DNA of 64,000 bases from Adineta vaga (lineage: Eukaryota; Animalia; Rotifera): the NCBI GenBank assembly GCA_021613535.1, contig CP075497.1, positions 13,392,001-13,456,000 on the forward strand. Direction: 5' to 3'. Of this stretch, positions 4,203 to 60,471 are shown piece after piece. Position numbers and translations under genes: made by a program. The notes below the pieces were generated by a model, which was not told the DNA's origin, did no database searches, and saw nothing but the letters and a program-made list of their open reading frames with translations. Position 1 is the stretch's first letter. The number at the start of each line of letters is the position of its first letter.

Positions 4203-4248
4203 TGAGGATATGAGTGTGGAAATAACTACCATTACTAGTTTCATCTCA
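4203..4248. repeat. Degenerate telomere-like inverted-repeat element (mainly left arm)
   Basis: TGAGGATATGAGTGTGG directly adjacent to the transposase remnant. Confidence 0.45.
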
Positions 4249-5647
4249 GCTACGAGGATCTACGGATGGTTTGTATTTTCAACGATCAAAGATCATTAGA
4301 GAATTTTAAATCTAACTATTACAAAATTTTAAACAAATTTCTGCAATGTGGCCTGATTGTTATGTACTTCAAATGAACACAAATATTTTCTCAATAGATC
4401 GATAGAATGTTACTTGGTATGGATGTGCTTGAGGTGCGATATCATGTTTGAAGAAGAATCTTAGTTTAGTGGTTAACAGAAATACTGCCAGAACGAAAGA
4501 GAGTTGAATAATATCCTGAAAATTGCTTAAGGGACGTGTGATATTGCTTCCAAATTCTGTGATGAAAAATAATTAAAAACTAAAATAATTATTTGCATCC
4601 CGTATATATCTGACAAGATCTATATGAATAACAAGTCATTGATGTCTTTTTTATCTGAAGACAGAGGATTTTAAATATTGATTTATTCTTTAATGGAAGA
4701 AAGAAAGAAAAAAGTATTTGCGATTTAGTTGCACAAGAAAAAGTGAAAACATGTTCAATCACACCCATATAACTACCAATTATTTGCTCCTTGTTAAACG
4801 CGTCAAATAGGAGCAAATGGTCGGTTCAAATTGTGACACCAAACGAGATCATATGCACGACTATATCATCGTTCGGGATTACTACAAATTGGACAAATCA
4901 TATTGAGTTTTGTTTCACCATGAATAATAAAAAATGTTTCAATTCGATAACGTAAGAGTTTTGAACAACTCTCTGGTACTCAATAAATATATGAGGATCA
5001 TTTGAATAAAATCGTCAATATGTGATGTAGCTAGTCGATCATCTACTCCTTTAAAACGGCACGAAGAAGCACCAAAGAATAGAGGCACATCACCGGATCC
5101 AACTTTATCAGAACAGAAGATAGCATCAGCATTATCGTCTAAACGAGAAGGAGAAAAACAAGATCAAATAGTAAGATGAATATTTGGTTAATATGAATTT
5201 GAACATATAGCTGAATGATTACTTTTTGTTGTACAAGATACGCTACTGGTAACAGCAAATAGTCAATTCTTCTATTCACCAATGTATCGAAGATATTTTG
5301 GTTTAACACCTCCTAATCCTCGATTATGTAATCCTCGTCTACTCGAGGACTACATTGATTGGTATCTTAATGTCTATTTGGAAGAAGAACTTCTATGGAA
5401 ATGGGTATGATGAAAGGAATTTTAAAAATAGGAAAATCGTAAAACTAACCAACAGAAAAACATATAAATAATTATGTTTCTTTTATTCATAAAAGAATAA
5501 ACATTGATTTATACTAGATTTCAGTTGGTCGTGGTAGCTCATGTGTATTTGTCTTGAAATGAGGACGATACGACAGTATTTTTATTCGTATATAATATAG
5601 TCAATATGTTCTATGTGAATATTATATGATACTGCGTACATAAAGCC

Positions 5648-5700
5648 ACCTGAAGAGGTCTTTGAGCAAGGTCGAAACCTCAAGATAATATTGACATGCA
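5648..5700 (+). ncRNA. Degenerate hammerhead ribozyme-like motif
   Basis: CTGAAGA-GGTCTT..AAGGTC-GAAAC followed by a TCAA..TTGA hairpin. Lies next to a Penelope-like RT fragment. The cleavage triplet looks mutated. Confidence 0.45.
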
Positions 5701-5741
5701 TAAACTGTTTGTTTAACTATGACTGACAGTGAAGATTGGTT

Positions 5742-6365
5742 TCAGTCGCTAAGCACTATAGTTAATGTAAGAAGGGAACCCATAGCTCCCCCTCTTATTT
5801 GATGATAATATTGATTATTGTAAAAGTAGTTATTGTTTATAACAAATCGAGCCAAACGAATAATAGCTTCAGCTTTTAAACCGTCGATTTGTTTAATATT
5901 TAAATAATCTAATATTTTCTTTAAAGATAATACACCTTCAACTTGTGGAATCATAGTATAAAGATCAGCCACGTCAATGGTACATAAGATTGTTTCTTGT
6001 TTTAAATTAGTTGAAGACCAATGTTTAACTTGTTTAAGTAATTCATAACCAGAAGTAACTGTTATTTTCTTGGCCATTTGATCAAATAATGGTCTTAATA
6101 AAGTGTGGAGAAACTTGGAGATTTCTATTGTTGGATGATTTAATCCAGATATAATTGGTCGAAGTGATGTTCCTGGCTGGTGTGCTTTTGGAAGATAATA
6201 GAGATGAGCTAATTCAGCTTCATCTACTTTAACACACAGTTGTTCATATTGCTTTTGAATAAGCCATTTAGCCAAACATAAATCTAATAAATATTTATTG
6301 ATACCAATAATGAGATCAGGTAATGAATTTTTAGTACCAATACATTGATAAGCTTGAGTCTTCCT
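5742..6365 (-). mobile_element. Penelope-like (Athena/Terminon-type) reverse transcriptase fragment
   Basis: LYYLPKAH.PGT.LRPIISG, TIDVADLYTMIPQ and YYHQIRGGAMGS are PLE RT motifs. Truncated before the catalytic YxDD. Confidence 0.85.
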
Positions 6366-6432
6366 TAATGTAATATTGATTAATCGAAATTTATATTTTG
6401 ATCCTTTTACTGTTCGATGATAATTTTTCTTA

Positions 6433-6448
6433 TGAGGGTGAGAGTGAG
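6433..6448. repeat. Telomere-like element, left arm only
   Basis: TGAGGGTGAGAGTGAG about 70 bp from the break point of the RT fragment. Confidence 0.5.
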
Positions 6449-6873
6449 ATCGGCTGCCATGACTGGTTTCACGTCGGCTAAGACGCTTAACGAATGGCTT
6501 ATCTATTTCGAATTCTTGTTAAAATTGACAAAGGAATTGATTTGTAATGTTTTGTTGATATTATAATTAAGACTGATTTTAGATAAGAAAGAGAGGACTA
6601 CTGCAAAGATCATATTGAAAAAAGTTTTATCTCAAACAGAAATAAAAGACAAGAGATTCAAGCTTTCGTGTTCGAACTAAACACATCATCAATAGTGACC
6701 TTGTGACATATCTATTAAGTTAAATGAGTATTTTAATATAAATTAAGGAGATATAAACAAAAAGTATGAATGTTAATCTAGTTGATGTTTTTGATGTTAT
6801 AAATATTATTGTTCTTATTCTTATTATTTTCGTTTCTGTTATTTATTATTTTTTTATACTATTTATACATTTT

Positions 6874-7189: not shown

Positions 7190-10100
7190 TTGATGTGGTG
7201 GACTAGATTAAAAACATTCGTGCGTACGTATAATGCTTTTCCTGAGCGTGAAGATCATGCTATTGATGAATATCAAACTCGAACACAGATTCTTTCTACT
7301 CGAATCTATATTATTGCACTACTGGTATGTCTACTTGCACTCGTCCTTACAAAATCGTTTGCTTTTAACACGACGAATCCTGTCACTCTCGAGTATCCCT
7401 CACTTCAACAATTCAATGCATTAGATAATCCACAATGTTCATGCTCAAATGTTGCCATTCCCTATTCGGCATTTATTTCATTTGAGCCCCGACTGCATTC
7501 GGTTTGCTCCAGTGATTTTGTAACAAGTCAATGGATTGAATTCATCAGTCAAAAAGATTACTCTACCTTCTATTGGCCTTTTGATTTTCGTGCAACGGGA
7601 AGCGTTCAATTTCAAGCTCTCGCTTCTTTCTGTAATCTTTCACGAGTATTCATTGAGCAAAATCTGGCAAAATTTCTTACGACTCAACTGATTAATGTAA
7701 ACGTCATTTCATCATCAGTTCTACAATTTCAAATAAATGTAGTTGTCAATGAATTTAAAGTGAGCGTTGTAGACATATTTTATCGTCAACGGTACTTGAC
7801 CGAACAGATGATTATAAACAACCTGTGTTATTCTAGTCTAGAAACAGGACTCGTAGTTTTCGCTGGTAAGGGAGTCAATGGATTTGGAGCTGGCAGTACT
7901 ATTCTCAGATACCAACAGACAATTAGCTCTCCTCTCTGCTCATGTCGCTTACAAACTTGTCACGTTTTGTCTGGCATATACGATCCAATCAAAGAAATTC
8001 AACTATATCCTGACATTTTCATTTTGCGACCCTATCAGACGAATTTGCAAATGTTTATACCAGGGCTAATTTCTTCATGTTATCCCTCGCAGTCATTACT
8101 GTTTTCAACACTCGAATGTTTTTACGAGCAATCATGTGTGAACAACTTAACTTCGTTCATTCCTTATGTCACTGTCAATAATCATTCTCGTCCTTATTTT
8201 ACGGCGTTACAACTGCCAACCAATAATACCGACAACCAGCCAGAGAACAGAACAGTTAGAGCCCTTGTTAATAATTTGATGCTTGAAACATGGACAGCGA
8301 CCAATATATCACACGAAAACTATTTTGTCACATGTGCTCCATCTGCTTGTATCTATTACGTTACTAAACGAAACGATTTCTTTGATGTTTTTACAACATT
8401 TGTTAGTTTCTATGGTGGTTTAACTATTGCTTTACGTCTGTTGGTACCGTCTATAGTCAAAAGATTCCGACGACGACAACAACAACAAAAAGTAGAATTA
8501 CAGTCGCCATCAACATCAATGCTAAATTTCGGTAAATATCAAGCGCTAGAGAACTAAATAATTCTCCATAAAAAAAATTCAGCAATAATTATTAAATGTT
8601 TTTAGTCATTCTCAAGTATTCTTCGAGCACAGTTATGTTATAGCATCAAAGGCCATTCGTTTTTTGTGCTAGTAGCTTGTGAACATTTCTAAGAGAGAAA
8701 CTATTTTTCTTCAAGTTCTTAAACAAAAATCCTTAAAAGCTCAGTTTCAATCTTAAAATGGTATCTTTTCCTTTTAAGTGGAGAATCTACTAACATTTGT
8801 CTTCTGAAACTTTTCAGGTGTAATTCATCGGTGTGCACTGATTGCTAAAACGAAAGAATTTTTTGTTACTCTCAGCATATTTCGTAAACCTCAAGACGAT
8901 CCGGCCGATGCTCAACTTGTTCTGGATCAACGTCTGTCGACACGTCTCTTCTTTTCCTTCTACTTACTGCTCTCTCTATATTTGTTACGTATTCTTTTGC
9001 TACAGTCGAAAATCGACAAGAAACTCTTCTTCAACCTACTGAAAAGCAAGTGATTAGTCTTCAAAAACTTTATCCCATCTCTCTCTCATGTCTTTGCTCT
9101 CATACTTCGATGACATACAATGTGCTCGTTTCAATGGAACCATACTATCATCAAATATGCTCAAGTGCCTTCGTCGATAACTCATGGATCAAGTACGTTA
9201 CTGCATTTAACATTCGAAATGTTACACCCGGTCTTGTGGCTGCTGATTTCCGGCTTTCAGCTAGTAGCTTTTTTCAATTATTGCAGACATTATGTGTCTT
9301 TGCTCAACAAACAACGAAAGTTAGCCAACAGATTTTCTTGCAAACAGAATTGATAAGTACGCAAGTTATTGAACAATCACTGTTTGAAGCGAAGATGCAA
9401 ACGGCCATTCGTGAATGGCAAACAGCAACAATAAATACCTTTATACGTGATCAACAGCTTATTCGTGCCATTTTCCAAGGAAATCAAATCTTAGCCGGTT
9501 ACAGTGGAAGTTTTAATTTAGTAAGATTAACTAGAATATAGAAATTCTTATGGAAGATTACACTACCTTCGCTATTTTAGAACTACTTATCAACTGGTCA
9601 AGTGTTTCCATCCCCAGCATATATTGCAATGCAACCGTACAAGAATACAAAATATCAGAGAGTAAGACCAAACATTCTTTTATTTTTTTTTTCTATTCTT
9701 TTATTCACTAATCGTTCGTAATAATGTATTTCTGCATTCCCTACAAAAGCTGAATCTTTTCACTCCAAAAATATAGGCGTCTGCCAAATTTTTTTGTGGA
9801 TTCTACTGTTCGATACAACATAGAACTCGGCAAAATGATTCTGCCATCTGAAGGATAGATGTGAGTGTCGATCTCGTATTCACACTAACATCCACATCCT
9901 CCATGGCGTGGAGATAGTGATATTCTTAAGTAATGACAGAGTGCGCATGAGCTTCGCCACCAGTAACGTGCCGGTTTACTCTGATTTATTCGATGCTAGT
10001 TTAATGGGCATATTTGTCCAATACAAATTTGAATAAGAGCGGCTCTCAGTGCTTTTGAAAGAGTTTTAGAAGCATTCGTACTCAAGATTTAGTGTCGAAA

Positions 10101-17796: not shown

Positions 17797-18849
17797 GAAA
17801 ACGTTCTTCAAATAGTTCTTGAATATGAAAAAGAATAGATATTGTATATGAGTATTCAGTGAGTAAAACACTTACAACTAGATTTCACGATATTTTCACA
17901 GAACAAGTTTTTGTCTACGATGATGAATGGCGGTATTAGAAACTATAAAGCGAACTTTTGAACAAATAATCGGAAACATTCAATTTTAATAGACTGATGC
18001 TGTTCACAAAAACATGGTACGTTTGAGATATATATATTATCGAAATCCTAACTTAGTTGATAACATATCTATGAAATGTCGTCTCTATATTTATTTTCGC
18101 TTTCTATTCTTAATAATTGATATATACATAGATAGATTGTGCTAAGAGCAGACCGTTTTCTAGTTTGAGTGACGTAATAAAAAACACTGTGATATCTTTT
18201 ACATTACATTTTGTATGTATATTTATGTATCTGGTTTCTTTTTTCTATCTGTTTGAATAAAATACAATACTGACAATTCTTAGCATTTCCTAAACTTAGA
18301 GGGATAGTATTAGTTTGAGAAATACACATTTCCTAGGAACTTCATACTTACTGCTGTTACTGCTTCTTTTGATTGTTATTCTCTATAAATGAGTTTCTTT
18401 TCACAACTGACTAGTAGTTACTCAGTAAAGGACTAAAATAAAACATTAATTTACGACTTTTCAGAAAAAACAAGCACGACAGGTTTTTTTCTATTCCCTT
18501 CTAAACAATTTTTTTAAAATTATTCTTAATGAGATTCTTTCAATAACTTTCTGAAGTAAAAATAATTTGATCTATATTTCAGAGAAGCTATATTATCTAT
18601 TTCCATGGAAACAATATTTTTCTTTGTAAAAACAAAAACGTGAAAACGTTTCGGCAAGCGCAATTTCAGACGTATTTAAACGCATTTATAGAGCAACCAT
18701 TTTTACAAGAGATATAGTGTAAATAACAAAAGATCAGATTGAATATGGATGCAATAGCTTTAATTTTTAAAACACAAAACATTAGGATAAAAAGTTCAAA
18801 TATGAAGAAGATATCTATTTACTTTTAATCACTAAAGAAAAACCAAAAA

Positions 18850-19080
18850 GGGGTGTGGGTGTGGGTGTCCGCTCATAAATGATCCCTCACTAGGGATCTA
18901 CAAAGTTCAGCTCAAGCTCAGAACCACTCACTTTCAAACAGTTCAGTTCAAATGAGCTGAACTGTTGAAAAAATTCAGCTTGTTCACATCGAACAATTGA
19001 GCAGTTCTAAAGTTCTTTTGAGTCGATTCTTGAGCTTGAACTTGTGTATACCTCTATCCTTCACTCTCACCCACATACCT
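18850..19080. repeat. Telomere-like inverted-repeat element interrupted by a MITE
   Basis: GGGGTGTGGGTGTGGGTGT ... CACTCTCACCCACATACCT. Confidence 0.75.
18891..19056. mobile_element. hAT-like MITE
   Basis: TIRs TAGGGATCTACAAAGTTCAGCTCAAG / CTTGAGCTTGAACTTGTGTATACCTCTA. 8-bp TSD TCCCTCAC / TCCTTCAC. Confidence 0.8.
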
Positions 19081-23702: not shown

Positions 23703-23760
23703 TTGAGAGGGTGTGTGTAAAGTAATTATAATACACTATATCCATACTGACACTCTACAA
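23703..23760. repeat. Telomere-like inverted-repeat element
   Basis: TTGAGAGGGTGTGTGT..ACACTATATCCATACTGACACTCTACAA. A further left arm TGAGGATGAGTGAGT lies at about 23808. Confidence 0.6.
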
Positions 23761-24379: not shown

Positions 24380-25833
24380 TTTTTAACCGAAGATCTGAAA
24401 TAAGAAGAGAATTTTTTTATTACACTTATCCTATATTTGAAATAGTTAAACTCAAAGAAAAACTTTGAAATTCTTCAGTCTTAAGTTAGTTGTGTCAAAT
24501 AAACTCAACAAATACATTAAAATAACAAAGTGAATACCTCTTCGAAACATCTCGGAGTGTTTTTCATTCCTAAAACTTGATTTCAAAGCAACCTTGAAAT
24601 CATTGTAGAGACAAAAATGCATCTATTGTCACATCTTTAACACGCGAAAACATTAAAAACAAAAATGAATACTATAAAAATAGTGATTTTCAATTGTTTA
24701 TGAGTTTTTCTACATAAATATTAGTCAAGGAACTTTTCGTTGAATAACAACTATCGGAATAGGATACACAATCAAATTATATCACAAAATCTATCTTATA
24801 GTCAGAATTACTCACTGAAAATTGCCAACAATAGTATGGAATGAATGAAACTATTGGAGTCTCTCGCCGTATTTATTTAGATAATATTTCATACGAAAGA
24901 TGCTTTCTGCCCGCAACGTGGGAAATAGAATAAGAGCCTTATGAGAACAAATTTTCTCCCTCCAATATTCCCATCGTCATTTCCATGGGAATGGGAATAA
25001 AATAATATTGTAGTTAAGAGAATTATTTATGCAAAACACAAAAATGTTCAGAAGAAAAAATAAATAAAGTAAAAGAATTAATAGAAAATGATTAAGAAAA
25101 ATGAGAAAACCTTAAAAAAAAAACACAAGTTCATGTGATAGAATTTACGAATATCTTTCGTATTTATATGAATATTTATTCGAAATATAACATTGATAGA
25201 TTCGATTTTACGATGAAAAAGAGTATATAATTAATTTCAACTTCGATTGATTCAAACTGCTAAATTTCTTATGTAAATTGAAAATCTTCACATATATCAA
25301 TAACAGAAACTGAACTCAAATTTTGAAGGTCATATTGAAATTGAGATATTTCCTCTTGAAACATCTTTGAACAGATGTTTAAAAATTTTAATTTAGGTAA
25401 ATATGTTCAATTAAAAATAAAGTCGATGGATGATAATGAGTTGTAAGTTGTTCAAGATTTGTTAATCCTGTACATCATTTATTCGAAAAGATCTATTTTA
25501 AATGATGAGAATTGTGATGCTTCTTTTACAATTTCTTGTTCCATAAAATGTAACAGAAACAAAAGAATAATCTGAATATTCATTTTTTGAAGTTAATGTT
25601 AATGAAGTTACATTTAGGAAAATAATATTGATTTGTTTCTTTCTATTAAGATTTTAGAATAAATTGTTAAATATTTTAGTTTATCAAATGTATTTCTATA
25701 TGATTATTATATCTTTTTATACTTGATTTTAATTCAAATTTATGAAATAGATAAAGTATATTATAAATGAATGATGAATTATTTGATATAGAATATTTTG
25801 TATACTAATTATGTTTATAATTCCAAAAATCAT

Positions 25834-36660: not shown

Positions 36661-36661
36661 C

Positions 36662-39156: not shown

Positions 39157-39206
39157 TGGAGGGTGTGGGTAGTTCTATATTCGGTCATCCACATCTACAT
39201 CCTCAA
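39157..39206. repeat. Telomere-like inverted-repeat element
   Basis: TGGAGGGTGTGGGT..CATCCACATCTACATCCTCAA. Confidence 0.85.
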
Positions 39207-39209
39207 TAA

Positions 39210-39900
39210 TTCTGTGATTTATCTCTAAATTGTACAATTCAAGGTAATTATCTTAAAAGAAATTCTACTAAAATGAGATATATATATACCAAAGTGAATC
39301 ATTTCTCCAATCAACTCTCGAATATTTTCATGATCAATATCCTTTCTTGATCTTATTCAACAAAATACAAATGATCACAATTCATCATCTCTTTCTTTAA
39401 TAAAATTGAATTCATTTTTCGAAAATACAACAATCGATAAACTTTTACATGATTTATTTATCATATTATGAATAATGTTCGTCTTCAATTTGTTTCTATA
39501 CTCTTATTGAAAAATTTAATATTCTTTATATATTTAATCTTATTCTTAATCTTCAAGATGATTAAACAATGATTTTTAAATATGGATTTGTCCAAATTTT
39601 ATTCTAATCGAAAACGACGAATTATTTTCATTTCTTTTTTTATGAAAGTTCATCTCGTATAAAAAACTAATACAACTTTCAATTATGAAAATATCATAAA
39701 CTGAGTAAATCATTTTTGTTTAGAGAGACTCATATGATTGATCATTATTCAAGAAAATATCTTTAATTGTATTAATTTTTTATGGAATGGACATGAAACT
39801 TTTCAAATACAAATAATTTATAGAAATAATACAAATATTTTCATTAATGATAGAATTAATATAAATTTTATTCTTTTCAATTCATTTTAATCTTCAAAAA
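39210..39900 (+). pseudogene. Decayed internal fragment of the Cys-rich multi-TM family
   Basis: CDLSLNCTIQ and LQSTLEYFHDQ, starting mid-module right after the element. Confidence 0.5.
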
Positions 39901-40684: not shown

Positions 40685-43600
40685 ATGATGCTTCCACTGA
40701 CACGTCTAAGTCAGTGTGAATACCTTTGCATTTTCTTTGCGTTTTTTGCAATCACGAACGCACAAAGCAACTTAACATCATTCCCATCATCTAACTCGTG
40801 TTCTAGTTCACAATTGTTATGTGGCGATTCCATTTGTTACGAACCAACAACACAAATCTGCACGTCAAACAACATAATTATCCAGTGCATTCGTGTTTGC
40901 GGAAATCAATGTTATAACCCAACAACAGATTTCTGTTCGAATAAAACTATTTGTTCGTATCCATCTCGAGTGTGCAATGGCCAATGTCTTCCAGAGAATC
41001 AAATGTGTGTTAATAACATGACGACGTGTATAATTCCAAATAAAAATTACTATTATGGATATAACCCATCTGCAATACAATCATGTAATGGTACTTGTTA
41101 TGATTCAGCTTTTCTCATCTGTTCTAACGGAACCATTCAATGTGTTAACTACTGCTCAGGTGTATGTTACAGTTCATCTTCACAACAATGTTTCAATGGA
41201 ACGTTGTGCGGTCTTGAACAAAACTTGTGCTATGTGAAGTATTACAATGGGGGAACAATGGTCAATCAACCGACACCTCAGTGTTATAATCCTTTATATC
41301 AAGTATGTATTAACAGTTCTCTCTGTTCATACCCATCTCAAGTATGCAACGGACAATGTCTTCTGAATAATCAAATGTGTGTTAATAATGTGACGACGTG
41401 TAAAATTTCAAATAATTTTGCCTCCTATGGATACAACCCATCTGCAGTACAATCATGTAATGGTACCTGTTATGATTCGGCATCCCAAATTTGTTCCAGC
41501 AATGCGATTGAATGTATTAGTAACTGCTCAGGTAGATGTTATAATCCATCCACACAACAGTGTTTCAATGGGACAGTATGCTCTTTTAATGACAAGTTGT
41601 GCTATATTAAATACGATAATTCGGGAACAACGGTCAATCAACCGACACCTCAGTGTTATAATCCTTTATATCAAGTATGCATTAACAGTTCTCTCTGTTC
41701 GTATCCGTACCCGTCTCGAGTATGCAATGGACAATGTCTTCTAAATAATCAAATGTGTGTTAATAATGTGACGACTTGTAATATTGCGAATAACGGTTAC
41801 TATTATGGATACTATCCATTTGCAATACAATCATGTAATGGTACCTGTTATGATTCGGCATCCCAAATTTGTTCCAGCAATACGATTGAATGTATTAGTA
41901 ACTGCTCAAGTAGATGTTATAATCCATCCACACAACAGTGTTTCAATGGGACAGTATGCTCTTTTAATGACAAGTTGTGCTATATTAAATACGATAATTC
42001 GGGAACAACGGTCAATCCACCGACATCTCAGTGTTATAATCCTTTATACCAAGTATGTATTAACAGTTCTCTCTGTTCATACCCATCTCAAGTATGCAAC
42101 GGACAATGTCTTCTAAATAATCAAATGTGTGTTAATAATGTGACGACATGTAAAATTTCAAATAATTTTGCCTCCTATGGATACAACCCATCAGCAATAC
42201 AATCATGTAATGGTACCTGTTATGATTCAGCATCCCAAATATGCTACAGTAGTGCCATTGAATGTATAAGTAACTGTTCTGGTAGATGCTACAATCCATC
42301 CACACAACAGTGTTTCAATGGGACAGTATGCTCTTTTAATGACAAGTTGTGCTATATTAAATACGATAATTCGGGAATAACGGTCAATCAACCGACACCT
42401 CAGTGTTATAATCCTTTATATCAAGTATGTATCAATAGTTCTCTCTGTTCATACCCATCTCAAGTATGCAACGGACAATGTCTTCTAAATAATCAAATGT
42501 GTGTTAATAATGTGACGACATGTAAAATTTCAAATAATTTTGCCTCCTATGGATACAACCCATCAGCAATACAATCATGTAATGGTACCTGTTATGATTC
42601 AGCATCCCAAATATGCTCTAGTAGTACCATTGAATGTATTAGTAACTGCTCAGGTAGATGCTATAATTCATCTTCGCAACAATGTTTGAATGGAACGTTG
42701 TGCGATCTTCAACAAACGTTGTGCTATGTGAAACACGATAATTTGGGAATATCGATCAATCCACCTTCGCTTTGGTGCTATAATCCTTCAACTCAAGTAT
42801 GTCTTAATAGTTCAGTCTGTTACTATCCATCTCGATTATGCAACGGACAATGTCTATCAGATAATCAAATGTGTGTTAATAACATAACCAGATGTAAAAT
42901 ACCCAATAACGGTTACTATTATGGATACTACCCATCTGCAATACAATCATGTAATGGTACCTGTTATGATTCGGCATCCCAAATTTGTTCTAGCAATGCG
43001 ATTGAATGTATTAGTAACTGCTCAGGTAGATGTTATAATCCATCCACACAACAGTGTTTCAATGGGACAGTATGCTCTTTTAACGACAAGTTGTGCTATA
43101 TTAAATACGATAATTCGGGAACAACGGTCAATCAACCGACACCTCAGTGTTATAATCCTTTATATCAAGTATGTATTAACAGTTCTCTCTGTTCATACCC
43201 ATCTCAAGTATGCAACGGACAATGTCTTCTGAATAATCAAATGTGTGTTAATAATGTGACGACGTGTAAAATTTCAAATAATTTTGCCTCCTATGGATAC
43301 AACCCATCAGCAATACAATCATGTAATGGTACCTGTTATGATTCGGCATCCCAAATTTGTTCCAGCAGTACGATTGAATGTATTAGTAACTGCTCAAGTA
43401 GATGTTATAATCCATCCACACAACAGTGTTTCAATGGGACAGTATGCTCTTTTAATGACAAGTTGTGCTATATTAAATACGATAATTCGGGAACAACGGT
43501 CAATCAACCGACACCTCAGTGTTATAATCCTTTATATCAAGTATGCATTAACAGTTCTCTCTGTTCGTATCCGTACCCGTCTCGAGTATGCAATGGACAA

Positions 43601-45539
43601 TGTCTTCTAAATAATCAAATGTGTGTTAATAATGTGACGACATGTAAAATTTCAAATAATTTTGCCTCCTATGGATACAACCCATCAGCAATACAATCAT
43701 GTAATGGTACCTGTTATGATTCGGCATCCCAAATTTGTTCCAGCAGTACGATTGAATGTATTAGTAACTGCTCAAGTAGATGTTATAATCCATCCACACA
43801 ACAGTGTTTCAATGGGACAGTATGCTCTTTTAACGACAAGTTGTGCTATATTAAATACGATAATTCGGGAACAACGGTCAATCAACCGACACCTCAGTGT
43901 TATAATCCTTTATATCAAGTATGTATTAACAGTTCTCTGTTCATACCCATCTCAAGTATGCAACGGACAATGTCTTCTGAATAATCAAATGTGTGTTAAT
44001 AATGTGACGACGTGTAAAATTTCAAATAATTTTGCCTCCTATGGATACAACCCATCAGCAATACAATCATGTAATGGTACCTGTTATGATTCGGCATCCC
44101 AAATTTGTTCCAGCAGTACGATTGAATGTATTAGTAACTGCTCAAGTAGATGTTATAATCCATCCACACAACAGTGTTTCAATGGGACAGTATGCTCTTT
44201 TAATGACAAGTTGTGCTATATTAAATACGATAATTCGGGAACAACGGTCAATCAACCGACACCTCAGTGTTATAATCCTTTATATCAAGTATGCATTAAC
44301 AGTTCTCTCTGTTCGTATCCGTACCCGTCTCGAGTATGCAATGGACAATGTCTTCTAAATAATCAAATGTGTGTTAATAATGTGACGACATGTAAAATTT
44401 CAAATAATTTTGCCTCCTATGGATACAACCCATCAGCAATACAATCATGTAATGGTACCTGTTATGATTCAGCATCCCAAATATGCTCTAGTAGTGCCAT
44501 TGAATGTATTAGTAACTGTTCAGGTAGATGCTATAATTCATCCTCGCAACAATGTTTGAATGGAACGTTGTGCGATCTTCAACAAACGTTGTGCTATGTG
44601 AAACGCGATAATTTGGGAATATCGATCAATCCACCTTCGCTTTGGTGCTATAATCCTTCAACTCAAGTATGTCTTAATAGTTCAGTCTGTTACTATCCAT
44701 CTCGATTATGCAACGGACAATGTCTATCAGATAATCAAATGTGTGTTAATAACATAACCAGATGTAAAATACCCAATAACGGTTACTATTATGGATACTA
44801 CCCATCTGCAATACAATCATGTAATGGTACATGTTTTGATTCGTTATCCGAAACATGCATCAACAGTACCGCTGAGTGTATGAACAATTGCTCAGGTAGA
44901 TGTTACAATCCATCAATGCAAAAGTGTTTCAATGGATTGCTATGTGGTGTGAAGGAACAGCTGTGCGAAATGAAAAATGATAATAGCTCTGCTGTTGAAA
45001 ACAATGGTGGAACTAATCGATGCTATGATCCTTTGTATAAAGTGTGTTTTAACAACACAATTTGTGATCGATTTACTCGTTCTTGCAATGAACGATGTCT
45101 TGGAGAGAAGCAAGTGTGCGTTAAGAATATCACGATATGCAATGTTACACGTTCATACTTTTATTACCAACTAAGCCAAATTCAGTTATGCGACAATGTT
45201 TGTTATGATACAGCTATTGAGCAATGTGTTCGTGGAGTCGTAACAGTAGGCTTCGTTTCAACTCATTCACCGGAGACAATGGCAACAGAGACGAATACGT
45301 CATTGGATTCAGATTCATTGGTGTTAACGTGGGTTCATTTGACATGGTTCAAGATACTCATAATTCTCTTGTTTATGTTGATCGCTTTCTCTCTTTTGGG
45401 TTTTGGTGCATGGCGAGTATATACTTCATGGTGGAATAAAAATGAAGAGTCGAATTCTTCGAGTCAGAATGAAATGGAATTAAGAAATATTGGGGATGTA
45501 AATCTGATTGATGACTATTTAAGAACACAAAGCCATTGA
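40685..45539 (+). CDS. Type I membrane protein with near-identical ~122-124 aa Cys-rich tandem repeats; apparent 2-bp frameshift at about 43935
   Basis: Signal peptide, repeated CNGTCYDS..C and CYNP units, C-terminal TM. TTCTCTCTGTTC is TTCTCTGTTC in one copy. Confidence 0.88.
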
Positions 45540-46013: not shown

Positions 46014-46069
46014 TGAAAGGGTGAGTGTAGATATCGGTTGAAGTTGTGCACTCTTACTCACATCCTTAA
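46014..46069. repeat. Telomere-like inverted-repeat element
   Basis: TGAAAGGGTGAGTGTAG..CACTCTTACTCACATCCTTAA. Confidence 0.7.
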
Positions 46070-47730
46070 AATATATCTATATGCAATTTAATGTCATTTA
46101 TTTTTTTTGGGAGATATCGCTAGTTTTTAAGTAATTTAAACGAGAAAATAAGAAAGAATACGTTCATAAATATTATAATTAAAGATAAAAACTAAATGTT
46201 AAATTTTTAAATAAATCTTTAAAATGTAACACACTGCCAATGGATTTATATGATTCAATTAAAACATATTAGATTTGATTAACATATGAAAAAGTCCTAC
46301 TGAATAATAAAAATAACATAAATTTGTAACAAATGATAAAGTAAAATTTTCATTGATGATCTTATATTAAAATATAACTTGTTGTTATTCCATATGATGT
46401 TATTCTTATAAAAATAAGTAAAATTTGTTGATCAAGAAGATTTCTTATTAAATGAATATTTTCATATGTTAAATATGCAAATATAATCATAATTATTATT
46501 GAAATAATACTCGTTAAATCAAGTGAATATAAATAATTATATATTCTATTTGTAACAATACATGTTTTTGTTATGGAAGATATATCAACAAATAAAAAAG
46601 ATGAAGAATTCTATGAAGACAACAAATAATAGAATTAAAATTAAAATAATTCGATATGTCCATTTTATATTACTTAAACGATACGTAAAGAAACATTTCT
46701 TGATGTAACAAAATATTGATCAATTGAAGTTAAACATGAATAATATAAATGAAAAAATACGAAAAACAGCTATGAAATATTGTCGTACACGACACCAATC
46801 TAAAGAATTTTGACTTAAATCAAAATTAAAACTAATACTTACAATACACGATATAAGATTAATACGAATAAATAAATGATTATCAATTATATTAATAACA
46901 ATTAAAAATAATTAAATATAAATTGTTAATTATTCATTTATATATGATAAGGACATTTAATTTCATTTAAATTATCAATTTTGTTTTTCTATTGAAAAGA
47001 CAAATTTTTATTTCAATTATTATTGAGAATTAAGAAAAATATAGACAGAAAAAAAATAATAGTCAGCTAAAAACACATGGATAAACCTTTCTTTCATCTT
47101 CATCAAAAAAATAAATAAATAAATTTTCAATCAATTAGAAAAACATTACTTTAACACGCAAAGCAAGAATAATGATTAGTTTTATTATAATATGTGAAAT
47201 GAATTTTTTAATTTAATGACAAAAATCAAATGATTATTCACATTTTCAATAAACATATTTTAGAATTTATTGTTTCATCTTTTTTTCTCTATATTTACTA
47301 TTTTGTATGTATCTCCGTATGAAACAAAGAATAAACAAGAAAATATTGATTATAAATACGAGATTGAATATAAGATATTTTGGTGAAGATGCACAACAAT
47401 ATAATAAAAATCGTGTAGTAATAATTAATAAAATTAATTCTTGAATTTATAATTCAAATATTTGAGAAGAAATAACGGATAAACTTATAAATTGATTTGA
47501 ACTTTGTTTTATTTACTAATTGACAAAATGTACTCAAATCTTCAAATGTCGATAGATATATTTTATGAAAATCATTATAACGAAAAGATATTTCAAAATC
47601 AACTTCAGAAAATGAATTTATCCATTCAGCACTTATAAATATATTTGATGATATTCATATTCAACATTTGACAATTTTCAAGAAAAACGAACAGTTGTTC
47701 CCTAGGACGTTAAAGGTTCAAATAAAAGAG

Positions 47731-49223: not shown

Positions 49224-49289
49224 TTGAGGATGTGATTGTCTCAAATAGAGATAAAGCGTATTTATTAACTGAATTCACACCCACACCCA
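49224..49289. repeat. Telomere-like inverted-repeat element
   Basis: TTGAGGATGTGA..CACACCCACACCCA. Confidence 0.8.
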
Positions 49290-49771
49290 TTAGCATGATC
49301 AAGAAAAATTCCAAATTTATTATTATAATTAGAAATTCCACTATTTTCCCACACTTTACTCATAAATATGTTTTTGATAATTGTATACTATCTATTCAAA
49401 AAACGTGAAATCGATTATTTTGCATTCCTATTTGTTATTATGTATCAATAAGGAAAAGAGATAAATCCATTGTATTGATATAGATATATTATATACATTT
49501 GTTTCGTCAAACGAAATAATTGTATTTTTCTTCACTTTAAAATAGTTTTACCGTTCGAAAGTTATATTATTTTCTGTTCCAGATAAATGAGAGCACATGG
49601 ATTAGTACAATTTAGGTTTTTTTCTCTTATGTACAAACATATATATATATCGTCGATTTTCTAACCTCAGTATTATTCATTCACAATCATATACGAAGAT
49701 AAAATTGTCAAAATAAAATAGATTTCACGTCTATAACTACACGTAAAACAAATAAGATATATTCAACTACA

Positions 49772-50601: not shown

Positions 50602-50661
50602 TTGATGGTGTGGGTATATAGATGTTAGTCGAGATAAGAGAAAAGGTATATACACCCCCTT
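50602..50661. repeat. Telomere-like inverted-repeat element
   Basis: TTGATGGTGTGGGTATATA..TATATACACCCCCT. Confidence 0.7.
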
Positions 50662-50887
50662 ACTTGGTAATAGTTACTCGTATTTTACCTTAACATATAT
50701 TTATACTTGTTCAATCATACATATTTCTGTTAAGCTTAACAACTTGTTTATCCATCTAATCAAATTTTATTGTAATATATTAATTTCGAAAAAAGAGATG
50801 TTACAAATTTAAATAGTTTCAGATGGATGTGTCTCTACTTCATATGTAATTCACTTTTCACGTATAGCTAAATGAATTATGAGAAAA

Positions 50888-53405: not shown

Positions 53406-53470
53406 TTAGGGTGTGAATGTGGGTGTTAGATAGATTTAATACTCACACCCACACTCACCCACACCCTCAA
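53406..53470. repeat. Telomere-like inverted-repeat element
   Basis: TTAGGGTGTGAATGTGGGTGT..ACTCACACCCACACTCACCCACACCCTCAA. Confidence 0.9.
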
Positions 53471-53718
53471 GAGAATAACGGTTATTCACTTTTTCGTCAA
53501 CACACGATAACGGTTATGGTATTTATCAGATTACAAATCCATCTCCTAATTATAATGAAGTTTGGAACTGGAAAGCAAATGTTGATAAAAGAATTCAGAT
53601 TCTCAATGAGAAGACCAATGCTGCAGTTACGTGGATGATTAGTCAACATGTGTAGACCAAGAAGGAAACTGGTAGAGATCACCAAGTCGATGATGAACGA
53701 CTTGGAGTAAACTGTTTC

Positions 53719-53780
53719 TTGAGGGTGTGTATAGGTGGGTTAAGTAAAGAGGAAGAGCTCTACCCATCTACTAACACTCT
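53719..53780. repeat. Telomere-like inverted-repeat element
   Basis: TTGAGGGTGTGTATAGGTGGGT..TACCCATCTACTAACACTCT. Confidence 0.8.
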
Positions 53781-53914
53781 TTTTTTGTAAGATTATTTAT
53801 ACATAATTATTAGAAAAGATACACATTTTTTCGTTCCTTTATTATGAAAAAGAGTAACGTTTATTTAATTGATAATATAAAAGCAGAAAATCTTTCCAGA
53901 ATAAATGAAATGTA

Positions 53915-55671
53915 TCATAAATGTTGTAATAATAATGCCATTTGATGACGATCAATGATTGGTGTAGTAAAACTAATGGGATCGAGCATAAACATATAAT
54001 TCGATGGATACCATGGGCCGCCGCACCACCAAGTCCAACCCATCCAAATGTTTGAATGATTTGAAAGATGATCTAGAAATGCTGGACCTTCATTTGTGCA
54101 ACTTGAATCATTTGACCAAGCGAATTCACCAAGAAAACCCTTGAATCCGTTTGTGGTTAACCATGTTGTTGCGGCTTGAAGGCTATTAGAACAGTTTGTC
54201 CTGCACGTCTGGTGTGTCCCTGATGAGTCGCTATCAAGATATTGATGCATTTCAAAGACGAAATTATTTATCGGATCACCGTTAAATCCATTCCATGCTG
54301 CGGCATTACCACTTGAAATCCATGAGTGTGCACCTGTCCAACTTGTACCTGGAATAAGAATTAGTTGCGATGCACCAACAGCTCGAATAGCTTGAATTGA
54401 TGGAAATGCTCCTGTATACCATTGGACAGCAGTTTGTGCGTGAGGTTCATTCATAAGACCAAACAATACATTAGGATAGTTCTTATATAAGGTTCCCATA
54501 TGAGCCCAGAAGTCTGCAAACAGATTCGTACCTTCGGCGTCTACACCGATCAGACGTTGTACTCCGACTCGATTGTCATAAATAACTCCGTAATTATGTG
54601 GATCCAGAATGACGTACATACCTTTGGACAGACAATAATCGACTACTATTTTCATGTAACTCATTTCTGTCATATTAAGCGATGAATAAGGTACAGGATA
54701 AGCACGTGTCATATCAAATGGCATACGAATTATCCCAAAACCTTGTGACACGTAATAGTCGATTTCTTTTGTGGTTGGATAAATATAATCGTATCCGTAT
54801 CTTTTTCCAACACCAGAATTAAATTCACCTCCCGATAGATTAGGACCTTTAAAATTATTAATCAGTGTCGGAATTGATGTCGGAATTGGATACGAAACAT
54901 ATCCTAATTTAGAAATTCATCAAAATAATATTTAAATCAACTAAACTCAGATATATTAAATAGAGTTTTGACTTATAGAAACAAGCGAAACAGAATTTTA
55001 TTTGCAAAAACACTCTATGAAGAAATTCGATACCGAATTGTGATCTTATCCGTCAATTCGTTAGTTCGCTGATAAAAACTGTTAAAATAATATTTAAAAA
55101 AAGAAAGAATTCTTTTTTCGTTTGATAGTTTCAAGATGATTTCTATCGTATTAGATCGATCGTTTATATAACCTATTCCAAACTGTCGAACAAATCAAAG
55201 TGATTAACAAAATAGTTTACCAGTTATGTTATTTGAGGATGTTGACGTTATATTTGTTTGATAATTCGTTAATATTGATGCTAAAAAAGAATAAATTGTT
55301 ATAGAAAATTGCTTTCAATGAATGATAGAGATTACATGTACTTAATCCTGTTGTAGTTGTCATAGTCGTAATTGATGACGTGCTTTTCATCTGTGTTAAA
55401 ACAATTGATAAAATTATAGCAGTTGATACGACAAGTGCGATCAGAAAGATGATTAGAAAACTGCAACATTTCCCAAAAACTGTACTACGCCTAAAAATGA
55501 CATATTTATTTGAAAACAGATTTATTCATATTTTAATTTACCTTGAAGAACGTGATGGAATTTTTTGAATTGATCCAATATCAAATTTGATAGATGATGG
55601 AAGATTCTGTTGAAATATAGAAAGGACATTTTAATAATTCAATCTTTTATTCCTAATATACTCACCGTCAT
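53915..55671 (-). CDS. Glycoside hydrolase family 5 endoglucanase (cellulase) with N-terminal TM anchor and Ser/Thr stalk
   Basis: GPNLSGGEF, ILDPHNY, GLMNEPH (acid/base), FEMHQYLDSDSSGT, FLGEF (nucleophile), WTWW. Catalytic exon 53915-54903 plus small upstream exons. Confidence 0.9.
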
Positions 55672-56123
55672 TATTCCTTTAATACGACCAACTAAATAAA
55701 TAGAGAAAATATTTTTCTTTTTTTTTTTTCTTCAATAATAAACTTTATTTTCGAAGCCAATAAAAATCGTATGCAACTACAAAAACTAAAAAGGACATTA
55801 AACATTCAATGTTGTTCTGGCAGCACGACGATTTTTTTTCGCCACGTTACGTCAAATATAAAGATATTTATGAAGGGATTGATCGAGTAATGCATCTCTT
55901 ATTTGTTTTCTAATAAAGTCAATTTGAAAAGAAAGAAAATTTCTTTTAAGGCCTTCCTACCATTCCAAAATCTTTCTCAGGTTAGGCATATGAAAATTGC
56001 TTGAAATTTTCAGAATATGTTGCGAACGTAGTAGAGAATCTATGATAAAAATCCCTACCCTATGTCATGCTGTTTAAGGGAGATATTCGCCAAACAAGGG
56101 TCAAAAATAGCTCATTTGGAGGA

Positions 56124-56415
56124 TTGAGGGTGTGGGTGTGGGCAAGAGAGATAAGCGGATCCTAGGATCGGTCAGGATCTACCAGGATCCATCTTCTATA
56201 TCGACTGAAAATTGTTATAAAACTAATCAATTTTTCATTGATTATTATGGGTTTTGATAAGTTTATCGAAATACAGTAACTTTCGATGAATTTTCACAGA
56301 TTTTGAGAAATATAATCGACAATCTATCAGGATCCAACACATCCGGGAATTCATGATCCGCTTTTCCCCCTTGGTTGTGGGTCGTCTTGTTCTCTTAGTC
56401 GAAACCCACACCCAC
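56124..56415. repeat. Telomere-like inverted-repeat element interrupted by a MITE
   Basis: TTGAGGGTGTGGGTGTGGG ... ACCCACACCCAC. Confidence 0.85.
56143..56373. mobile_element. MITE with 8-bp TSD (hAT- or P-like)
   Basis: TIRs CAAGAGAGATAAGCGGATC / GATCCGCTTTTCCCCCTTG. TSD GGTGTGGG / GTTGTGGG. Confidence 0.8.
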
Positions 56416-57174
56416 GCGTTTATCTGCTTGGAACCGCTAATTCAAATTTTTCTCAGTCGTACCATTTTTTTCTTTATTTTGGGATATATTGAAATATTCT
56501 TATAAACAGTTAATCAAGCTACATAACTTTGAAGTCTAACCTAATGAAACTTTTGTTGTTAATCTATTAAACCATTTTTTGATATAACGAAATCAATGGT
56601 AAAGATATGTCTCATACTCATGACATCATCGATAATTGTTTCGGCAAACGTAATACTATCTTGAGTTTATAGATATCTATGTGAAAATTTCATTCATATA
56701 ATTATAATTATGTACACTCACTCCTAAAAACAAATCAAATTATCAATAATTGTTCAGTGTTTCTGATTGGACTGAAATTATTTGGAAGTCATTCTTTCTA
56801 AAAGATCTATAAGTTCAGCCTTATTTTTAGATCAGATCGTTGGAAAAGGAATTGACAAGTGAGAAACAACCCGTTGTCATTAGAATAGCGCGGCATAGCT
56901 GATGTGAGATTCTGTCATTTATTTTTTGATATTTTTAAGTGAGGGAAACAACATATATAGAGAGAGAAGAGCTGTTAGTAAAAAATAACTACTGAATATA
57001 CAGGATCAGGGCTACTTAGATCTATGCGCGAAGAAAGAAGAAGAAACAAATATGCGAGTAATACAGCAGACAGAGTGATGAGCAGATGTCGGACGATTAT
57101 CAACCACAAATAGTTTTGTTATTAAAACAGTATGCGAAGACAAGCAAATCAAAAACCAATACTAATTGAGAACA

Positions 57175-57602: not shown

Positions 57603-57649
57603 GAGAGTGGGTGTAGATAAAGAGACAACACTCACACCCACACCCTCAA
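57603..57649. repeat. Telomere-like inverted-repeat element
   Basis: GAGAGTGGGTGTAG..CACTCACACCCACACCCTCAA. Confidence 0.85.
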
Positions 57650-58130
57650 ATATTGATATATAATATTCTTTGAACGAAATGCAACGAAATAAAACTTAAA
57701 ATTCTATTGGACAGTATTGATCATCAAAGTTTTGCATAATAAATCTTAAGGTATTTTAGGTTTGAAAATCTTCTGATAAAAGATAATATTTAGTTTCCAA
57801 GTAAAGTTTATTACACATCATACGGATAAAACCCTTCTTATCTATGTCGAAATTCCAAAATTTTTATCATATAAATATAGGTACTTTCGCAATATTTTTA
57901 GATAATATTCATTTTTAATGTTACTTACCGTTTTTTTCTATTGTTGTTTAAACTGTATTCCATCTTCAAGATGATTTTGATGATATCTATATAAAGGTTT
58001 GTAAAATAATTGATATTAATCGTCGCTGTATCGTTAAAAAATCTGACATAGTATAGTATTTTTAAATTCAAGATCATATATCGATGATTAAGTTAATCCC
58101 AATTGTATTTAGCTTCTTTTTCTAGATAAT

Positions 58131-59413
58131 ATGAATACCGAAAATCATACAAATAGTGGTGCGTCGGCCAATGGAAGCTTTCCAACAATAACAATACTAC
58201 AAACAGATATGGATGAATGTAAAGCAGCGTTTACAGTTGGCGGTGTCAAAGCATATGAAACATTATGCTACGCAACAAAACACAAGAATGGAAGACAGTT
58301 CCTCTGAATATTGGTGTTATTGGAAATAGTGGAGCAGGAAAATCAAGCTTTATTAATGGTATTAGAGATCTAGATGGAGACGATGAAGGTGCAGCAGAAG
58401 TTGGAGTTACAGAAACCACGATGGAATCAAGGTCTTACTCTCATCAAAATAATGAGATGATGAAATTTTGGGATTTACCAGGAGTTTGAACGAATTTATT
58501 TCCGAAAGAATCATATTTAGAAAAGATTGGTTTTGAAAAATTTGATTTCTTTCTTATCCTGAGTCATACACGATTCACAGAACTCGATACTTGGTTATCG
58601 AACGAAATAAGAAACAAAGGAAAACAATTTTTTTTCCTACGAACAAAAATTCAATCTGATATTGTAAATGATCAAAGATCTCATCCGAAAAAGTACAGAA
58701 ATGATGTAAAGGTTGTCATAAAAGAATTATTACATGAAGTACGCGCCAATCTGCAAGAAAATCTTGGTAATCTTTATGAAGAAGGAATAGTCTTTCTCAT
58801 CGATAGTTATGAACGAAACAAATTTGATTTTGCTCTGTTGGCACAACGTCTTGTCGAAGATTTTCCCGGTCTCAAGCGCCAAGCATTTATCTTTTCTATG
58901 AATACGTTTAGTGAGCAAATGGTCCGGGTAAAAGCTCAGGAACTTCGCTCTACATTGTGGCAATATTCTAGTTTATCAGGTTTGGCAGCTATTGCTCCTC
59001 TTCCTGGTCTCTCTGCCTCTGTCGATTGCGCGCTTATTATTAAAGCAAGCAAATTTTTCTATAATCAACTTGGACTCGGTGATTTATCTCTGCAGAAAAT
59101 AGCCTATTTTACAAAAACAAATTCAGTGACGTTACAAAATATCGCTAAAGAAGATCGCGATGTGGACAAACTTCTTACAGTACAAGGAATTGAACAAATA
59201 ATTCGTAATACACCAGCGCTGATGATTTCAGCAGCAGTTGAAGAGTATCTGCATGTATTTCCTTATGGTGGTTCCGTAGTAGCAGCGCCACTTTCATTTG
59301 GAACTACGTATTACATTCTTAATTTTATCTTGAATAAAATGGAGGAAGTTGTCTTACGTGTTGTAAAAACTGCTGCTGAGAATGCTTCCATTAATGCTAC
59401 AAATAATGAATAA
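58131..59413 (+). pseudogene. Interferon-inducible GTPase (IIGP/IRG-like) pseudogene
   Basis: GNSGAGKSSFIN, AAEVGVTETT, WDLPGV*, FFLRTK. Frameshift near 58265 and TGA at 58487. Confidence 0.88.
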
Positions 59414-59532
59414 ACAAGCAATAAAACTTTATTTTGTGAACATGAAACTTTTTGATATTCGCTGTAATCTTAATATTTATCCAATGAATTACAATTTACT
59501 CTTCTCTCTAAGATATTTAATTTTCATCATTC

Positions 59533-59735
59533 TATAGAGGGCGCACTTTTATTACGATATACTAAGATTGGTTTCATTAGTTCATTTCGTTCGTTAGAAA
59601 AAAGAACATTTTCATGACAATGTCTGGTCGCAATTCAAATATGTCGAATATTGAGTACCGAACTGTAATAAAAATTTTCATCCGAAAAGGGCTAAATGCC
59701 ACCGAAATTAGCAAAGAGTTGAATAATGTTTACTA
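59533..59735 (+). mobile_element. Mariner-like transposon 5' fragment
   Basis: TA-TAGAGGG.. end and HTH MSNIEYRTVIKIFIRKGLNATEISKELNNVY. Confidence 0.75.
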
Positions 59736-59769
59736 TGCACTGTTGGAATTAAAAGTATTTTCCGAAAAG

Positions 59770-60420
59770 TTTTAAACGAATAATATCAATAAAAGTAATA
59801 TCATCGTCATTGACATTGTCTTTTATTTCTGTTACAATGAACTTGAAACCAGCAGGTAATAAAACTTCTTCTTCATCTTTCATTTCGCTTAAATGTGAAA
59901 TATCTACAAGTCAATTAAAACAAAATCTTTCTGTAAAATGACTTAAATCCATATTAAAAATAACATTTTCACCAAATCCTTTTACCATATCAATCGATTT
60001 ACTTGTCGATGTAAATCCTATAACCATTGAACTCGTTGTTATTCATTTATAATCTTTCTATATTGATCAATAATTGATTGTTCAAAATAACAACTACGAT
60101 ATTACATGTCAGTGTATTATTATCATAAAGATAAACAGTAAGTAAATAACAAAATATGGTTCAAATGTTTCTGATTGAGTTTCATCAATATTTCGAAGTG
60201 ATTCATTTACAACTTCATAAAGAAATATATTACGTGTGTACAAACGAATACAATACATGAGAATTTGATTAAATGATTTAAATCACTATGTACTGCATCT
60301 ATTACATATTCTTCGTTTCCTTTTAATTGACATTTTTTCATTTTAAAATCAGAATAACATTTTTCATCAAAACTTGAATTTGATTTAGATGGAAGAATTA
60401 CTTCAGGATCGATTGTTCTT
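59770..60420 (-). pseudogene. NAD:arginine-type ADP-ribosyltransferase pseudogene fragment
   Basis: YTRNIFLYEVVNESLR, GFTSTSK and DISHLSEMKDEEEVLLPAG (STS and ExE motifs). Confidence 0.8.
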
Positions 60421-60427
60421 TCTAATA

Positions 60428-60471
60428 TGAGGATGTAGGTAAATACGAATGAATGACACTCACATCCTCAA
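60428..60471. repeat. Telomere-like inverted-repeat element
   Basis: TGAGGATGTAGGT..CACTCACATCCTCAA. Confidence 0.85.

Follow-up and report, generated by a model that had tools for sequence, protein, structure and literature searches.

Telomere-fusion sites such as human 2q13 consist of G-strand followed by C-strand telomeric repeats at an internal chromosomal position, and they decay with time. The hairpins that are the subject of this report, found in a 64,000-nucleotide stretch of genomic DNA from Adineta vaga, a bdelloid rotifer (C6:13392001-13456000, contig CP075497.1 of assembly GCA_021613535.1; hereafter the window), have the same arrangement, but differ from fusion sites in that there are at least hundreds of them per 100-Mb genome, that their arms usually amount to 2-4 repeats beginning in a fixed register, that the arms are separated by a spacer of 7-50 nt which is often recurrent, and that they are flanked by gene-sized fragments rather than by whole chromosomes. 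De novo telomere addition, as it occurs in yeast, in ciliates and during DNA elimination in Ascaris, similarly places repeats exactly at a break, on a 3' end and with a fit of a few bases to the template, and neotelomeres have been reported at A. vaga deletion breakpoints (PMC13564844). At the junctions described here, however, repeats appear to have been added to both ends and the ends rejoined, so that healed ends would now be internal, and what would be the first templated bases, (CC)ATCTTGAG, lie outside the repeat itself.

Bdelloids also carry Athena/Terminon elements, endonuclease-deficient Penelope-like retroelements that are telomere-associated, have (ACACCC)n 3' tails on G-rich ends and 5' ends capped by short telomeric stretches, and have host genes trapped between copies (PMC6431247, PMC3846280). 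Their terminal additions differ from the hairpins in being head-to-tail tracts that are all G-rich on one strand; the hairpins, in turn, lack a reverse transcriptase body, and neither in the window nor at four loci bearing such tails did a hammerhead ribozyme reach the Rfam gathering score. The ciliate elements TBE1 and Tec are likewise units between inverted telomeric repeats, C-rich at each 5' end as in a free minichromosome, but they encode a transposase and generate a 3-bp target duplication, whereas the units here are ordinary or horizontally acquired genes without a duplication. Integron attC sites and MITEs (miniature inverted-repeat transposable elements) are also short, dispersed, imperfect palindromes of fixed polarity between gene cassettes; here, in contrast, neither a core site nor a target duplication was found, arm length is unconstrained, and no integrase was seen among 10 open reading frames (ORFs) scanned, with no systematic search having been made.

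Bdelloids combine ancient asexuality, extreme tolerance of DNA breaks and the highest horizontal gene content among animals, and about the way in which foreign and duplicated genes are built into their chromosome ends there has so far been only conjecture. That these animals have neotelomeres and telomeric stretches in interstitial positions is already known. Our literature search, outside which the Terminon and 2007 Athena papers fell, found no description of head-to-head pairs, of their scale, or of their leader and spacer families, and no report of conservation across genera or of a base-exact coincidence with breakpoints. We find that back-to-back telomere-repeat pairs number at least hundreds in this genome and that homology between related DNA segments often stops exactly where such a pair begins, and we think it probable, though well short of certain, that the pairs are seams of repair or capture at which two 3' ends, each first elongated on a C-rich RNA template, were joined head to head.

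Head-to-head telomeric hairpins and their architecture

The window lies ~440 kb from the right end of chromosome 6 (C6; 13,893,210 bp) in a six-contig assembly of 100.8 Mb, and its GC content is 22-38%. A 17-mer of the arm matches it 12 times with at most two mismatches, against 0.02 matches expected, and at all 18 sites that the first-pass annotation had picked out as clearest a G-rich arm is indeed followed by a spacer and then a C-rich arm, although decay is heavy at several of them. A looser scan of the window found distinct pairs that were all G-first except for one weak, chance-like C-first pair. In a 342-kb sample of the genome (the window, C1:16.0-16.2 Mb and 26 further loci), in which arms were called without reference to the TTGAGG boundary, there are 72 G-first pairs and 2 C-first pairs, with a median spacer of 15 nt (range 7-49) and median arm lengths of 18.5 and 21 nt; another 85 arms were called singly, many of them with a decayed partner present. 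Across the whole genome, a search for exact 10-nt arms lying 8-38 nt apart returned 659 matches in G-first and 3 in C-first order, a count that includes overlapping registers and therefore exceeds the number of distinct sites, and the 17-mer with at most one mismatch gives 1440 matches against ~100 for a control. The proposal that the G-rich arm always comes first was thus borne out almost without exception. Hairpins occur at a density of one per ~4-8 kb, clustered in distal chromosome regions rather than uniformly spread: on C1, among the matches listed, the distal parts are crowded and 2.2-11.5 Mb is avoided. The sites of the window, which have no assigned strand, and two of the gene units that they bracket are as follows.

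9849-9903: decayed G-first hairpin, from arm inspection
18849-19080: long foldback; telomeric arms 18849-18871 and 19062-19080, nested inner inverted repeats, DNA fold z -6.7
23703-23760: weak, decayed site with a clear G arm and a doubtful C arm
25832-25883: hairpin at the P450 unit's 3' end; homology to L053 (see below) reaches its outer edge (25882) and stops there
28037-28129: hairpin between the divergent P450 and U-box genes; long C arm at 28076-28119
29421-29483: hairpin separating the 3' end of the U-box gene from the gene that follows; C arm decayed
34338-34387: hairpin 3' of the gene for a 1186-aa membrane protein; G arm nearly lost
34527-34586: hairpin 3' of the NHL gene; 17-mer match and arms
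36662-36737: hairpin between the divergent NHL and BTB genes; CCATCTTGAGGG boundary intact
39157-39207: hairpin 3' of the BTB gene; 17-mer match and arms
46014-46070: decayed hairpin, from arm inspection
49224-49292: hairpin; boundary present on the G arm, missing from the C arm
50602-50665: decayed hairpin, from arm inspection
53406-53470: hairpin with a spacer resembling, by eye, the TAGATAGAT group; z -3.9
53719-53780: hairpin 3' of the GH5 gene, orthologous in A. steineri; synteny ends at its outer edge, 53719
56124-56416: long foldback 5' of the GH5 gene; arms 56124-56143 and 56401-56416, nested inverted repeats, unique interior
57603-57649: hairpin with a perfect outer C arm; 17-mer match and arms
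60428-60471: hairpin with arms decayed by transitions; 17-mer match and arms
25884-28036, minus strand: P450 gene unit between hairpins; 90.6% identical to L053, where the neighbours differ
53781-56123, minus strand: GH5 cellulase gene unit, bracketed by hairpins in A. vaga and A. steineri; neighbours differ

The arms share more than the repeat. When half-sites are aligned on TTGAGG, the TT is present in 93%, the three positions before it (-3 to -1) are A in 61%, T in 63% and C in 50%, and further outward conservation is at background level, with CC in ~20%. Among paired arms called without the boundary, TTGA precedes the first GGG in 40%, CTTGA in 27% and ATCTTGA in 16%. The outer TTGAGG/CCTCAA boundary first described as fixed is therefore real, but it is not fixed and it extends further outward; the full consensus is (CC)ATC-TTGAGGG-(TGTGGG)n, with conservation stepping down outward. 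The first unit of an arm resembles TGAGGG and later units are mostly TGTGGG, in an alignment that is anchored on TTGAGG and so not independent of it. A 15-mer spanning this boundary, ACACCCTCAAGATGG, occurs 179 times in the genome, equally on both strands, against 0 for a control, and mid-chromosome boundary matches include C1:9065604 and C3:8482232. No asymmetry was found between centromere-side and telomere-side arms, the boundary copies on the right arm of C1 being strand-equal.

The two arms of one hairpin are nearly independent of each other, both in length (rho 0.25) and in similarity within as compared with between hairpins (p 0.056). Snap-back copying that yields a perfect palindrome was rejected on this ground, and because short spacers show no self-complementarity in excess of what chance would give (mean z -0.32, p 0.057). 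An arm of fixed length produced by one pass along a template was likewise rejected, as lengths run from 13 to 41 nt without a sharp mode, and so was a pre-existing palindromic cleavage site, CATCTTGA..TCAAGATG, of which the genome holds only 2. Decay has affected many of the arms, chiefly through G>A and C>T changes. By eye, G>A predominates in G arms and C>T in C arms, which corresponds to C>T on the C-rich strand (for example at 25866-25883, 39186-39207 and 60428-60471), and this pattern might be related to cytosine modification of the repeats. Arms of this kind may also inflate the number of transposons with terminal inverted repeats that are called in automatic annotation of bdelloid genomes.

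Spacers had been described as unrelated to one another, and this held only in part. The 19-nt spacer GTCAGRCTATACTCTTAAC (family F1) has 36 copies in the genome at no more than one mismatch, and in 30 of 30 copies read it is enclosed by a G arm on one side and a C arm on the other, with flanks that differ in all 30; the arms beside it measure 12 to 191 nt. In an unbiased set, 14 of 48 spacers match some other spacer better than the 99th percentile of a shuffle null, eight of them belonging to the GTCAGRCTATACTCTTAAC family, so that recurrent families account for about 30% of spacers. One young copy is perfectly palindromic, its stem being 25-28 bp long (z -12), and the interior of the long foldback at 18849-19080 has ~10 related copies, mostly near chromosome ends.

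G-first pairs with the same leader are present in A. steineri and A. ricciae, and in A. steineri haplotypes at 96.7-99.5% identity the hairpins are in place. In Rotaria sordida, 24.7 kb contain four pairs, every one of them G-first, and the arms, which can be as long as 350 nt, resemble true telomere tracts. A bdelloid-like metagenome contig of higher GC content reads CATCTTGAGGG followed by (TGAGGG)n.

Coincidence of homology ends with hairpin outer edges

A comparison of hairpin-adjoining DNA with its close relatives (paralogues, haplotypes or other species) gave five informative pairs with eight internal block ends, of which five lie exactly on the outer edge of a hairpin, one inside a hairpin, and two at a distance of 110-175 nt. 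The chance of a coincidence within 3 nt is ~0.003 per end, a figure that is a rough estimate rather than a computed test.

The P450 unit of the window is 90.6% identical, from 25882 to 27929, to a locus (L053) on CAJNOH010002584.1 of GCA_905250005.1, a contig of 35% GC that is labelled Rotaria sordida and is probably an Adineta-like contaminant or misassigned. On the 3' side of the gene both copies read ...AGTCTT, after which the window continues with GAGGG... and the rest of its hairpin, and L053 with unrelated DNA that has no hairpin and in which homology does not resume within 1 kb. On the 5' side a hairpin is present in both copies, 110-130 nt past the end of homology and with different neighbours beyond it. 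Two 96% identical A. vaga paralogues, L048 and L049, lie 0.8 Mb apart on C3, and their homology ends at CCCTCAA/GAAAAAG of the L048 hairpin, L049 running on without a hairpin into unrelated DNA. The same pattern is seen twice within A. steineri. Loci L057 and L060 (99.3% identical) share ...GATGTTGA, after which L057 has a 39-nt hairpin and different DNA, and L060 runs on with no hairpin; loci L054 and L062 (91% identical) share ...GTATGATG, followed by a G arm in L054 and by a continuation that reads like coding sequence in L062. At the other end of this last pair, the gene-side arm is common to both and the partner side differs.

The fifth pair is between species. The GH5 gene of the window and its counterpart in A. 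steineri have 89% protein identity, and the hairpin on their 3' side is orthologous, with 16 of 21 spacer positions matching and 72% identity over the hairpin against 82% in the adjacent untranslated region (UTR). Alignable sequence nevertheless ends exactly at the outer edge of this hairpin, and the neighbours differ; on the 5' side a hairpin lies 115-175 nt upstream in both species.

At four of the five exact ends, then, a hairpin is missing from the partner copy, which runs on into unrelated DNA. The bases that were already there at the exact breaks (TCTT, TC, TTGA and TG) are in register with the motif, and the bases added after them keep to that register. In the two cases examined by local alignment, nothing homologous lay past the edge. 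Flanking homology resumes in one of five comparisons of filled with empty sites and does not in the other four. The sole case that resembles a plain insertion comes from another A. vaga sample (run X10), in which a contig carries a 39-nt decayed mini-hairpin between 34198 and 34199, with homology on both sides and no target duplication. This insertion places a TGA stop, within its CATCTTGAGG leader, at the end of the gene for the 1186-aa protein.

Proposed joining of capped ends and competing explanations

We favour the explanation that every site is a seam, left either when a double-strand break was repaired or when a fragment was captured. A broken end would pair, through 0-4 bases of microhomology, with a C-rich RNA template, on which a reverse transcriptase, either telomerase or possibly an Athena-type enzyme, would extend the 3' end from a fixed-register start, giving (CC)ATC-TTGAGGG and then 1-4 or more TGTGGG units. 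Two ends capped in this way would then be joined head to head across a short filler. If the original partner ends were rejoined, the outcome would be a small insertion; if the ends were of other origin, it would be a junction of unrelated segments, and repetition over time at chromosome ends would leave gene-sized blocks bracketed by seams.

Several of the observations follow naturally from such a process. G-rich DNA would be added only to 3' ends before these are joined, so that pairs are expected to be G-first on either strand and their orientation is explained without selection. The stepped boundary and the in-register microhomology are as predicted by priming on a C-rich RNA template, and near-independent arms of unfixed length fit two separately extended ends better than a copied palindrome. 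Where the partner copy continues without a hairpin, the hairpin-bearing copy would be the fragment that was capped and joined elsewhere. The reading also agrees with hints in published work: bdelloid subtelomeres carry short telomeric stretches, and copies of Athena have host genes trapped between them (PMC2861651, PMC6431247); at deletion breakpoints of A. vaga lines, fragments of Athena have been seen as well as telomeric repeats (PMC13564844). Among the three mechanisms that the first-pass annotation had put forward, namely ligation of telomere-capped fragments, programmed breakage and attC-like recombination, the first is the best fit on account of the exact edges and the register, although it leaves the spacer families unexplained. 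On this reading, the joining of capped fragments is a route to duplication and, by extension, to the capture of foreign DNA.

Some of our results weigh against this explanation. Neither 36 near-exact copies of one spacer nor a foldback interior that recurs ~10 times is expected from random filler, and both look like the copying of whole hairpins. The GH5 hairpin is orthologous between species and yet ends synteny, which needs a second event at an already existing hairpin; such an event would result if arms of neighbouring hairpins underwent single-strand annealing with each other. Only eight block ends were compared, and BLAST ends can drift to low-complexity arms, for which reason each exact case was checked by local alignment or by eye. 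As to the recurrent spacers, they could have come from the same RNA template, from conversion between hairpins through the homology of their arms, or from small mobile units that were copied.

The last of these possibilities leads to the strongest rival, a family of very short mobile foldbacks, MITE-like or retro-copied from hairpin RNAs, with telomere-like terminal inverted repeats and a habit of inserting at breaks, which would bring them to rearrangement junctions too. We regard it as unlikely, but it stays a rival because the argument made earlier against a MITE rested on the partly mistaken notion that the spacers are unrelated. Such a family would account for the terminal inverted repeats themselves, for the recurrence of spacers in unrelated flanks and the internal sequence shared by the GTCAGRCTATACTCTTAAC copies, for the young copy with its perfect palindrome of 25-28 bp, and for the nested inverted repeats of the long members, one with a multicopy interior; the allele pair at 34198/34199 looks like a simple insertion, and G-first orientation would come from descent. 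Against it, no target-site duplication was seen at any inspected copy, as had been noted at the outset, and homology was not resumed past the element in four of the five filled/empty comparisons. Nor are arms that range from 12 to 191 nt within one spacer family and are barely correlated, a boundary whose conservation is graded rather than uniform, or R. sordida arms of 100-350 nt what one would expect of terminal inverted repeats, and palindromic empty targets are uncommon (2 in the genome).

It is improbable, in our estimation, that the hairpins are recombination sites of gene cassettes, whether acted on by an attC-like recombinase or by ectopic homologous recombination or single-strand annealing between arms. 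The GH5 and P450 units do keep their bracketing hairpins while their neighbours differ between genomes, L054 and L062 have the gene-side arm in common and a different partner side, and one spacer family is found in opposite orientation at two loci, which fits conversion between hairpins. However, the partner copy lacks a hairpin at four exact breakpoints, which is not what a two-site exchange would leave, and no conserved core extends beyond the telomeric register. The absence of a recombinase from the window, asserted earlier, holds for the 10 ORFs scanned with Pfam, no systematic recombinase search having been made. For attC-like sites as such we found no positive evidence. Rearrangement at an existing hairpin does occur, as GH5 illustrates, and both hairpin recombination and the mobile foldback remain as rivals or as secondary processes.

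Selected cis-elements, acting as two-way terminators or insulators or as sites of programmed breakage at which each of the two ends would retain a telomere seed, would suit the intergenic position of the hairpins, one of which is found in nearly every gene gap of 25.8-39.2 kb, as well as the fact that a transcript of either strand meets a GU-rich arm first, the end of the NHL RNA contig at 34631, 45 nt before a hairpin, and the position of the GH5 hairpin, which is kept in two species. RNA-like contigs are otherwise sparse and do not cover the hairpins, and they are uninformative on this point since contigs cannot show ends. This explanation strikes us as very doubtful, slightly more so than cassette recombination, in view of arms that decay freely by transitions without any sign of constraint, an orthologous hairpin that evolves faster than the neighbouring UTR (72% vs 82%), 5' ends and divergent gaps that are as frequent as 3' ends, a concentration in distal chromosome regions rather than at all genes, and the lack of an excess of AATAAA/ATTAAA towards hairpins (22 vs 20 flanks), and programmed breakage in particular gains no support. 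Bulk DNA contigs also weigh against it: for 33800-39300, the one stretch queried, eight runs from four studies hold at least 85% of the sampled words, in contigs that cannot show molecule ends. A terminator or downstream poly(A) element was rejected because there is no oriented excess of AATAAA.

If the seams are real, they would constitute a base-pair record of at least hundreds of joining events that can be dated and compared between species, they bracket single genes such as a bacterial-type GH5 cellulase, and they make a clear prediction for existing long-read data from irradiated or desiccated animals. The constant leader of the arms provides a defined sequence for tracing the template RNA, CCACACCCACACCCUCAAGAUGG being the string to look for. 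It is tempting to go further and to speculate that free germline DNA ends in general, foreign ones included, receive a templated telomere seed and are stitched into chromosome ends by capping and joining, the seams being reused for later breaks or recombination. We hold this broader proposal only tentatively and think it rather unlikely in its full form. Were it true, bdelloid subtelomeres would behave like a cassette array in a eukaryote, with gene-sized units being gained, lost and inverted, the physical route of massive horizontal gene transfer would be in view, and the constant leader would spell the template of rotifer telomerase RNA.

Genes of the window and telomere-tailed elements elsewhere

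Gene models of the window were searched against Pfam exon by exon, which confirmed the P450, U-box, NHL, BTB and GH5 genes; the kelch identity proposed earlier was not confirmed. The sites are intergenic, 30-500 nt from ORF ends, and are found at 3' ends, at 5' ends and between divergent genes. This distance led us to reject the idea that a stop codon within TTGAGG serves as the end of genes. There are 1-2 sites in every intergenic gap of 25.8-39.2 kb, and the notion of one gene per interval, originally put forward as typical, applies to that part and to 53.4-57.6 kb. Homology to a U-box paralogue begins at 28133, beside the hairpin at 28037-28129.

The GH5 gene (I4U23_031505) has as its best non-rotifer relatives bacterial proteins of 47-49% identity, from which a horizontal acquisition of the cellulase appears likely. 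Next to it, at 53471-53718, a 250-bp fragment lies between two complete hairpins and has no counterpart beside the A. steineri GH5 gene; it fits a very small captured fragment. Elsewhere in the window, an internal tandem repeat with a 372-bp period and 84-92% unit identity occupies 40952-45142, inside an ORF of 1099 aa that has only a weak match to DUF5648. A known RNA family was rejected as a source of the hairpins: Rfam returned nothing at gathering score in the window, with sub-threshold, miRNA-like noise on a long foldback.

Two 2.5-kb copies on C1 (16070295-16072849 and 16138828-16141377, in L001-L020) are 97.8% identical and have no telomeric arms nearby, and they are probably an ordinary transposon or a recent duplication. 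A separate element of ~250 bp, resembling a short interspersed nuclear element, was found in full at L008:8541-8790 and L002:1558-1792 and 5'-truncated at L015:4280-4495 and L004:6085-6294. Its head derives from a tRNA (tRNA-Thr-like according to ARAGORN, a tRNA according to Rfam), its 3' tail consists of C-rich telomeric repeats, and no hammerhead in it reached the Rfam gathering score; it has the look of a non-autonomous companion to Athena/Terminon, with priming on G-rich ends.

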